Translations under genes and position numbers: made by a program
Part shown: positions 27,704 to 61,701 of the stretch, in pieces
Numbering within the stretch: position 1 is the first letter of the stretch
How the letters are laid out: each line of letters begins with the position of its first letter
DNA from: Haliotis cracherodii
Lineage: Eukaryota
NCBI RefSeq assembly: GCF_022045235.1
Contig: NW_027266319.1
Coordinates: forward strand, 36,022,001-36,086,000
Length of the DNA: 64,000 bases
Direction of reading: 5' to 3'
Notes under the pieces: model-generated
Told to the model about the DNA's origin: nothing
The model's input: only the letters and a program-made list of their open reading frames with translations
The model's database searches: none

Positions 27704-30700
27704 TCAAGTAATATGATCCAGATATTTCCTGAAGACTTGTTTTACACCATCTTTCCTGGCCATGTGCCTGGCTGTCTGTCCGTGCTTGTCCTGACTGTCA
27801 CCAGCACCATGTTTCAGCAGAAGCTCCACACACCCTGCGTGCTGGCCTCCACTGGCGATGTGAAGAGCTGTGGACAAGAAATGAATGTGTTTTATTCTGT
27901 ATTGACCAACATATGAGGGTTCTGAACCTCACATAGTATGAATTGGGTATAAATATGGTTTGATGCATCCCATGTTAGGTTTCATACCAAAAGCTGCAAT
28001 TGTAACCTATTGTAGGATGTATAAATGTACTAGTGCCCTGAGTGATACTACCACCACAAATGTATCTTGCCAAAATGTTACAGTCTATCTATGGGTGAAT
28101 CATTCAGTAGGTTCAAGCATGAGGTCCTGGAGATGGTGATATCTACAGGAGATTCAAGCGTGACATCCTGTGGATGGGTAAATCATTCAGGAGGTTCAAG
28201 CATGAGGTCCTGGAGATGATGATATCTACAGGAGATTCAAGCGTGACATCCTGTGGATGGGTGATTTATTCAGGAGGTTCAAGCATGAGGTCCTGGAGAT
28301 GATGATATCTACAGGAGATTCAAGCGTGACATCCTGTGGATGGGTGAAACATTCAGGAGGTTCAAGCATGAGGTCCTGGAGATGGTGATATCTACAGGAG
28401 ATTCAAGCATGACATCCTGTGGATGGGTGAATCATTGAGGAGGGTCAAGCATGAAGTCCTGGAGATGGTGATATCTACAGGAGATTCAAGCATGACATCC
28501 TGTGGATGGGTGAATCATTGAGGAGGTTCAAGCATGAGGTCCTGGAGATGATGACATCTACAGGAGATTCAAGCGTGACATCCTGGGGATGGGTGAATCA
28601 TTGAGGAGGGTCAAGCATGAAGTCCTGGAGATGGTGATATCTACAGGAGATTCAAGCATGACATCATGTGGATGGGTGAATCATTCAGGAGGTTCAAGCA
28701 TGAGGTCCTGGAGATGGTGATATCTACAGGAGATTCAAGCATGACATCCTGTGGATGGGTGAATTATTCAGGAGGTTCAAGCATGAGGTCCTGAAGATGA
28801 TGACATCTACAGGAGATTCAAGCGTGACATCCTGTGGATGGGTGAATTATTCAGGAGGTTCAAGTATGAGGTCCTGGAGAGGGTGATATCTACAGGAGAT
28901 TCAAGCGTGACATCCTGTGGATGGGTGAATCATTCAGGAGGTTCAAGCATGAGGTCCTGGAGATGGTGATATCTACAGGAGATTCAAGCATGACATCCTG
29001 TGGATGGGTGAATTATTCAGGAGGTTCAAGCATGAGGTCCTGGAGATGATGATATCTACAGGAGATTCAAGCGAGACATCCTGTGGATGGGTGAATCATT
29101 CAGGAGGGTCAAGCATGAGGTCCTGGCGAGGGTGATATCTACAGGAGATTCAAGCGTGACATCCTGTGGATGGGTGAATCATTCTGGAGGGTCAAGCATG
29201 AGGTCCTGGAGATGGTGATATCTACAGGAGATTCAAGCATGACATCCTGTGGATGGGTGAATCATTCAGGAGGGTCAAGCATGAGGTACTGTGCACAGGT
29301 GAATCATGAAGGAGGTTCAAGATGAACATTATGCAAGGAGACTTCTTACCAGATCGTAGTGATGTATCCAAGAGATGGACATCAGCTCCACGCCTCAAAA
29401 GGTGCCCCACGGTAGCATCCTGACCCTCCTGCAAGGAAGAGATTTACAATGTCAACATGGCCAAAGATAGCAATTTACCCCATTACAATACTTTCTGACA
29501 GGTTTTGAATTAAGGTTTTAAGCTAAATACTCAATACTCAGACTGTTAGTCTCTGAGACAAAGCCATGTCCTGTATCAACACAATATGAAAACTACACAC
29601 CTTGTAGTTCTTCAGATGAGGCACAGGTAGGCACAGTTTATATTAAATGGACAAACAAACAGACAGAATCTCAGATAGTTGGAAAACAATTTTCACTTCA
29701 CATCGGTCAGCAAGAGAAGTTGAAAAGTGAGTTTAACCCGGGAGTCACCAATATTTCAGCCAATCTGGTGGCTTGCAAATGTCTTTGAAAACAAGTGACA
29801 GAAAACATAAGCAATGATACACACTGTAAAAAAATCAGCCAGGTTACATATCATACTCTTCTGGTCGGCTTTCAATAAGAATGTGGTACATGGAACATAT
29901 GAATACCATTAAGCCATTCTGTAACAAGCCACACAAATATAACATTGAGTCAGGACTGTATTCGCAAGTACAAAGGTCTCTTACCTTATACCAACCAAAC
30001 CATGTGGTTCAGTAATACACAAAGAGCCATATAACAGGCAAAAATGCCAACCCACATAGCCGAAAAGTGTCAAATTTGTAATGTCAAAGAGAACCCTCCA
30101 CATATTCCTGGGTTTGATTCATTATGGCATTCAAGGTGAGGTACAAAGGAGTTTAACGTCCAAGATCCAAGATTAATACACTTATATAGCGACGTGCATT
30201 CATATTGAACAGGAATCAATGGGGGAAGGAAGTGATGAGGACTTATCTTAGCAGCCACATGGTAGGAGAAAGTGCTGAAGACCGACCTTCCGCAGCCACA
30301 TGGAGGGGAGTAATGGTGGGAGGAAGTGATGAAGGCTGACCTTGGCAGCCACATGGAGGGAGGGGAGGAAGTGATGAAGGCTGACCTTGGCAGCTAAATA
30401 GAGGGGAGTAATGGTGGGAGGAAGTGATGAAGACTGACCTTGGCAGCCACATGGAGGGGAGTTATGGTGGGAGGAAGTGATGAAGGCTGACCTTGGCAGC
30501 CACATGGAGGGAGGGGAGGAAGTGATGAAGGCTGACCTTGGCAGCTAAATAGAGGGGAGTAATGGTGGGAGGAAGTGATGAAGTCTGACCTTGGCAGCCA
30601 CATGGAGGGGAGTAATGGTGGGAGGAAGTGATGAAGGCTGACCTTGGCAGCCACATGGAGGGAGGGTAGGAAGTGATGAAGGCTGACCTTGGCAGCTAAA

Positions 30701-61701: not shown

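Follow-up and report, generated by a model that had tools for sequence, protein, structure and literature searches.

Tandem repeats whose unit covers an exon/intron boundary were named 'mirages' in the Adh3 gene of amphioxus (Canestro et al. 2002, Nucleic Acids Res 30:2871, as cited in PMC3087553 and PMC3902484), for which length polymorphism and somatic instability were shown according to the later papers that cite it. Amphioxus mirages were also described in the globin genes BflGb6 and BflGb9 (PMC3087553) and in the troponin C and PGBD5 genes (PMC3902484), at both exon edges and with splicing undisturbed. In human, intron 7 of F7 contains a 37-bp variable number tandem repeat (VNTR) whose first element covers the exon 7 donor, and the site used is the most upstream one, chosen by 5'-to-3' scanning (PMC1557585). 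Here, six tandem arrays (a to f) at splice junctions of an ANKRD16-like ankyrin gene and of FBH1 were analysed in 64,000 nucleotides of DNA from the abalone Haliotis cracherodii (contig NW_027266319.1, positions 36,022,001 to 36,086,000). This whole stretch is referred to as the window, and coordinates are positions within it unless another contig is given. A first-pass annotation of the window had stated that no named feature class was known for such arrays, which did not hold as the class was published as mirage minisatellites (PMC3087553, PMC3902484) and the F7 intron 7 VNTR is similar (PMC1557585). The kind is already known, and what is new here is the animal lineage, a mollusc, and the high local density.

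The abalone arrays were similar to the amphioxus mirages in having a unit that spans the exon/intron boundary at 5' and 3' exon edges, with many copies containing AG or GT, and in having homogenised inner copies with the edge copies left out (PMC3087553). The normal splicing reported for the amphioxus mirages had its abalone counterpart at the donor of array e. However, the amphioxus globin mirages have units of 150-160 bp in 3-6 copies, whereas the abalone units were 43-53 bp in up to 34 copies. Amphioxus is a cephalochordate, whereas the mollusc had five mirages in two adjacent genes and one intron made up wholly of two such arrays. With F7, the abalone donor arrays shared a real donor followed by identical pseudo-donors, and the F7 pseudo-donors are silent with the most upstream donor chosen, as was found at array e. 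The F7 case concerns the donor side only (50 constructs), whereas the abalone genes also had acceptor arrays with 33-34 upstream decoys; no experimental model for acceptor-side arrays with many upstream decoys was found in the literature.

Two further comparisons were made. In Rogers' model of intron gain, as far as it is discussed in PMC3087553, tandem duplication across an AGGT proto-splice site likewise makes extra splice sites from exon sequence, but the abalone arrays lengthened existing introns and produced no new intron, and the exon positions matched the orthologue mapping. Ordinary intronic minisatellites (VNTRs) resembled the junction arrays in unit size, in homogenised copies with degenerate edges and in the short direct repeats that flank them, and the 31-, 33-, 42- and 83-bp arrays of the same two genes, which are without exon sequence, looked alike to them. 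What set the junction arrays apart from ordinary VNTRs was only where the founding duplication lay with respect to the junction.

Anatomy of the junction arrays

The arrays lie in two genes arranged head to head, an ankyrin gene on the minus strand and FBH1 on the plus strand. The ankyrin gene was of all-ankyrin type, with 7 exons from 38377 to 27707, and the translations of six of the seven matched Pfam ankyrin families in the deduced frames; the gene is called ANKRD16-like, a putative label that rests on these Pfam matches. FBH1 started at 38609 with a first exon of 543 codons containing an F-box (Pfam), and UvrD helicase motifs were present in later exons (Pfam). A comparison of ten long open frames of the FBH1 region with Pfam produced nothing useful. 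Since the FBH1 exons are short, their mapping needed orthologues, which were found with the first exon as query in a profile-free search that produced the full-length relatives P0001 (73% identity), P0014, P0019 and P0028. A total of 17 FBH1 exons were mapped on the window by tblastn of these four proteins, with exons searched singly. The exon edges of both genes were based on the Pfam Ank, F-box and UvrD matches, the FBH1 orthologue tblastn, GT/AG sites with kept reading phase and, for exons 9-12 of FBH1, also on spliced RNA contigs.

Tandem Repeats Finder (TRF) recovered all six arrays at the places given by the first-pass annotation, with units of 43-53 bp, 3.6-34 copies and 86-98% matches. 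In the ANKRD16-like gene, array a (30259-31230, minus strand) had a 53-bp unit within a 151-bp higher-order unit and approximately 17-19 copies. Its unit consisted of the last 21 nt of exon 5 (..LHVAAK) and the donor GTCAG(T/C), and the 3' end of exon 5 (31210-31371, minus strand, 162 nt, ankyrin repeat) was the first copy of the array. Array b (34234-35736, minus strand) had 34 copies of a 44-bp unit made of 26 nt of intron end (pyrimidine tract and CAG) followed by 18 nt from the start of exon 3 (34154-34251, minus strand, 98 nt), the 5' end of which was the last copy. Array c (35747-35904, minus strand, 44-bp unit in 3.6 copies) began at the G of the donor GT of exon 2 (35905-36027, minus strand, 123 nt, ankyrin repeat) and was without coding sequence. 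Arrays b and c together made up the whole length of intron 2.

In FBH1, array d (43950-45394, plus strand) had 33.7 copies of a 43-bp unit made of 13 nt of intron end with AG (TGTGTTTCAG) and the first 30 nt of exon 5 (45365-45487, plus strand, 123 nt), an exon set by the orthologue tblastn, and the unique intron upstream of the array was 75 nt only. Array e (52010-52812, plus strand; 45 bp in 17.8 copies by TRF) consisted of 17 full copies and a partial one, with a unit made of the last 39 nt of exon 11 and GTAAAT that was in frame and stop-free over its 45 bp. Exon 11 (51912-52048, plus strand) lies in the UvrD helicase motif region and was spliced to exon 12 (53316-53415) in RNA contigs. 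Array f (60636-60963, plus strand) had 6.2 copies of a 53-bp unit made of the last 20 nt of exon 16 (60539-60655, plus strand, 117 nt, UvrD_C motif) and GTGAGT, and ended in an 11-nt partial copy that resembled the authentic copy and not the inner copies. The phase check showed that the reading frame from exon 16 into exon 17 was kept by the donor at 60655 only; another donor 29 nt upstream was ruled out as it broke that frame.

Reading of the array edges confirmed that the unit spanned the exon/intron boundary, with 18-39 nt of exon and the GT or AG, in five of the six arrays, array c being the one that did not. The exonic share of the unit was 0, 18, 20, 21, 30 and 39 nt of 43-53 across the six. 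In the arrays read, the copies ran only into the intron and the exon was left intact as the terminal copy, as the first-pass annotation had described. This is the necessary outcome of any tandem duplication spanning a junction and is no special property. Inner copies were homogenised (93-98% identity) and the exon-attached copy was slightly different; that of array e deviated from the array consensus in 4 of its 45 positions, while the distal copies of arrays a and d were degenerate. This is the pattern reported for amphioxus mirages (PMC3087553). Short direct repeats flanked array b (TGGAGAT) and array f (11 nt). Arrays b and c, and array e, were found at no other place in the genome, and the origin of these three arrays is locus-specific.

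Four of the five units with coding sequence were not multiples of three. The decoy exons yielded extra protein matches and open frames of 300-550 codons, both of which are traps for annotation.

Donor use at FBH1 exon 11 and splice signals in the copies

RNA and DNA contigs were compared with positions 48000-53999 of the window, which contain array e. The RNA runs X7 and X11 were from the same species and X17 was from a second species, the DNA of which holds approximately 45% of the sampled words. Exons 9, 10, 11 and 12 of FBH1 were joined without introns in RNA contigs of X7 (1380 nt), X11 and X17, and position 52048 was joined to 53316, exon 11 to exon 12, in X7 record 24, X11 record 6 and X17 record 19. 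The donor used was the first, exon-attached copy ahead of a 17-rung in-frame ladder in all three runs and both species, and the inner copies carry the identical donor sequence CAG/GTAAAT. No RNA contig of the runs examined lay on 52200-52800. The most upstream of several identical donors is used at FBH1 exon 11, as in a ladder of the F7 type. The idea of the first-pass annotation that the ladders act as decoy, alternative or recursive splice sites was thus not borne out at this ladder, for which the RNA contigs showed no use of an inner-copy donor.

In the second species, one DNA contig (X13 record 12) kept the introns; it passed through the exon 11 donor and ended nine bases into the next unit, as is expected at a repeat. 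The start of array e is common to both species, and the array therefore predates their split.

The splice signals were mostly retained in the copies. No copy of array a, e or f lacked its GT, and all 33 copies of array d had the AG. In array b, no position of the unit varied more than the A of the AG, and 8 of the 34 copies, among them the one immediately upstream of the real acceptor, had lost the AG. The changes were A>G and A>T, with at least 4 separate changes or backgrounds. A test of this loss was post hoc and gave a rough chance probability of approximately 0.003; the loss hints, post hoc, at selection that removes and does not keep decoy acceptors upstream.

Frequency and origin of junction-spanning arrays

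The two genes had 22 introns and 12 large arrays, which made up approximately 36% of intron length. The window was picked from 558 windows for showing the pattern, so enrichment measured in it is overstated. Under even placement, with arrays collapsed to one unit, 5 of the 12 arrays spanned a junction against 1.09 expected (P=0.0026), and 8 spanned or lay within 10 nt of one against 1.38 expected (P=8e-6). With the host intron taken as given, the 5 spanning arrays compared with 3.0-3.2 expected (P=0.12-0.17) and the 8 spanning or within 10 nt with 3.7-4.0 expected (P=0.003-0.007). The excess shrank because several host introns are only approximately 100 nt once collapsed, those of three of the arrays being 98 and 118 nt. 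Masking of interspersed repeats (blastn against 357 kb sampled) removed approximately 4 kb and changed the expectation little. The long introns (1.3-2 kb) of the two genes were without arrays, and a null model purely of short ancestral introns was rejected as it fitted intron 2 of the ankyrin gene and intron 4 of FBH1 but failed for the array-free introns. The earlier claim that the arrays sit at junctions non-randomly was borne out under even placement (P=0.0026), but much of the excess was gone given the host introns (P=0.12), and spanning arrays were at the chance rate in an unselected sample.

A third gene of the window was also counted. It lies at 2887-22708 on the plus strand, upstream of the gene pair, and is a large multi-domain gene; its exons include CUB, EGF and Ig-like ones and one for a trypsin-like protease (GGSLINTQWFLTAAHC). 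Five intronic arrays were found in it, and an array beside a stretch of N at 5282-5453 was excluded from the counts; none of the four assessable arrays spanned a junction, and the nearest started 57 nt past the donor at approximately 17851.

The unselected sample consisted of 293 kb around fn3 exons of fn3-containing genes, drawn from a genome-wide list of such exons without regard to repeats, and contained 150 fn3 matches (local hidden Markov model), 41 arrays (TRF) and 191 exon candidates (coding model). Three of the 41 arrays spanned a junction against 2.7 expected (P=0.5). All three were true mirages with coding sequence, and the exons of two of them matched fn3 in Pfam. Two lie on contig C45, one at 24.517 Mb (L022:619-1956, 73-bp unit in 18 copies, approximately 58 nt of exon and GTAAGT) and one at 24.551 Mb (L023:3627-4047, 58-bp unit in 7.7 copies, approximately 29 nt of exon and GTGAGT). 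No other array was present in the 12 kb sampled there, and the two, being 35 kb apart, possibly belong to one large fn3 gene. One other array of the sample carried an acceptor AG, and for five the gap between array end and junction was 10-33 nt. Six arrays thus had an end within 35 nt of a junction against 2.35 expected (P=0.03), those spanning or within 35 nt numbered 9 against 5.05 expected (P=0.055), and 6 arrays lay within 60 nt of fn3 matches against 2.4-3.5 expected. The acceptor ladder was a 27-bp array in 11.6 copies on the minus strand (L028:8455-8766, contig C6 at 22.544 Mb), each unit ending TTGTGTTCAG. Its last copy supplied the real acceptor of an fn3 exon without any exon sequence, which makes it the mirror image of array c.

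Mirages are common in this genome because minisatellites are common, and arrays spanning junctions were not over-represented in the unselected genes. The excess of arrays beside junctions is approximately two-fold; it could be genuine or could come from young transposon insertions that dilute the deep introns. Array density was uneven, with 12 large arrays in 34 kb (window 27700-61900), 4 in a giant fn3 gene of 73 kb (C10) and 8 in 12 kb (C26).

The six arrays are probably, at an estimated probability of about 0.55, neutral mirage minisatellites that straddle junctions and are tolerated through positional splice-site choice. Slippage or unequal exchange would give rise to ordinary minisatellites in a genome with array-packed introns, and the founding duplication would have happened to straddle a junction in five cases and to lie right against one in three. 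Duplication of a junction-spanning segment would keep one complete exon and push the extra copies into the intron, which would be harmless while the spliceosome stays with the exon-attached site. The donor chosen would be the most upstream copy, by 5'-to-3' scanning as in human F7, and the acceptor would be chosen by exon definition, as the copy continuous with the remainder of the exon and with the donor downstream of it. Clustering at this locus would result from the very high array density, from host introns of approximately 100 nt before expansion and from the picking of the window. The scattered exonic share of the units fits random placement and not a break at the junction. Several results count against this explanation, namely the excesses under even placement, the excess within 10 nt that persisted with host introns as given, the long introns without arrays, the abutting arrays of the unselected sample and the proximity of two of its three mirages. 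In addition, the splicing evidence covers one of the six arrays and comes through contigs, which drop rare isoforms. The excesses would be accommodated by a process such as transcription- or splicing-coupled breaks, R-loops or exon-edge chromatin that favours the birth of minisatellites near junctions, perhaps mainly in germline-transcribed genes. Such a process is a possible but less likely source of the arrays. It also agrees with the 5 of 12 spanning arrays in broadly needed genes compared with 0 of 4 in the domain-rich protease gene and 3 of 41 in the fn3 genes. However, spanning arrays occurred at chance frequency in unselected genes, junctions fell at arbitrary offsets within the units and not at array ends, which misfits a break at the junction, the window was one picked for its pattern, and young transposon insertions in deep introns inflate near-exon enrichment by approximately two-fold. 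From the mutational seeding at junctions proposed by the first-pass annotation, the mild excess of abutting arrays in the unselected sample (P=0.03) stood and the spanning arrays, at chance rate there, did not. A narrower form, in which minisatellite birth is non-uniform and concentrated by a coupled mutational process at the junctions of particular, perhaps germline-transcribed, genes, is slightly more doubtful still; if true, genes of the FBH1 and ANKRD16 type would gather junction arrays far above chance and tissue-specific genes would not.

It is improbable that selection keeps the ladders as decoy, alternative or recursive splice sites, with copy number tuning the productive mRNA or with the exon 11 ladder adding 15-residue modules. 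The intact GT of arrays a, e and f, the intact AG of array d and the exon 11 ladder, which is in frame, without stop codons and shared at its start with a second species, agree with a tuning function, but GT/AG retention is typical of every position in young homogenised arrays, and the AG losses of array b point, if anywhere, to selection against decoys. Moreover, RNA contigs of three runs and two species used the authentic exon 11 donor only and none lay on the array, four of the five coding units are not multiples of three, and the amphioxus and F7 precedents report no splicing effect. Collapse or inflation of repeats in the assembly is a very unlikely origin of the arrays. Short-read contigs did break at them, and the copy numbers are those of the assembly. 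However, the assembly is very probably the black abalone one from PacBio HiFi reads of 15-20 kb with a quality value (QV) of 62 (PMC9709981), and reads of this length span arrays of 0.3-2 kb, which makes an artefact unlikely. The copies also showed ordered variants and higher-order structure, and the second-species DNA contig passed the exon 11 donor into the start of the next unit.

The arrays are natural experiments on splice-site choice, with a real acceptor behind 33-34 look-alikes and a real donor ahead of 17 identical in-frame ones, and the message appears normal despite these look-alike sites. In a genome so rich in arrays, scanning and exon-definition models could be examined with no need of engineered constructs, and it could be asked whether junction neighbourhoods are mutational hot spots. 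The comparison also carries a methodological caution, as windows picked for a pattern overstate its enrichment and the unselected sample gave chance-level frequencies.

Other arrays and features of the two genes

The remaining six large arrays of the two genes were also recovered by TRF. A 31-bp array in 57-66 copies (31382-33446, minus strand) stopped 8 nt short of the ANKRD16-like exon 5 acceptor AG, and a 33-bp array in 10 copies (43339-43671, plus strand) stopped 7 nt short of that of FBH1 exon 4. An 83-bp array in 14.5 copies (28091-29291, minus strand) started 58 nt past the donor of ANKRD16-like exon 6, and a 42-bp array in 16.7 copies (49470-50172, plus strand) started 63 nt downstream of the FBH1 exon 8 donor. 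The first-pass annotation had described four more arrays as abutting junctions or starting within about 40 bp of them, which applied to the first two and not to the last two. Finally, two arrays were located in mid-intron, a 26-bp array (37536-37852, minus strand) in ANKRD16-like intron 1 at 223 nt from the donor, which shows that not every array is junction-bound, and a 17-bp array (57111-57620, plus strand) in FBH1 intron 14 at 534 nt from the donor.

A search of the window found no FBH1 exon downstream of exon 17, and the 3' end of the gene model is therefore provisional. A candidate strong donor, GTAAGA, was present at 61702, 39 nt before an 11-bp repeat, GGGTACAGCGT, in 6.6 copies at 61741-61813; this repeat lies either in the last FBH1 open frame (61585-61860) or 39 nt past the donor.

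At the other end of FBH1, the start codons of the ankyrin gene and FBH1 (38377 and 38609) were only 231 bp apart, head to head, in the region 38076-38608. This spacing suggests a shared bidirectional promoter for the two genes. ANKRD16 and FBH1 are presumably neighbours in human too, which would mean an old gene pair.

High-copy interspersed repeats that resemble short interspersed nuclear elements (SINE-like), with tRNA-like ends, were located in FBH1 introns at 46234-47663, 48319-48688 and 52969-53082, and further SINE-like high-copy repeats were found in introns of the same gene at 57922-58199, 58900-59257 and 61205-61568. These repeats had a word depth in the thousands in RNA and DNA runs and 26-43 matches within the 357 kb sampled.

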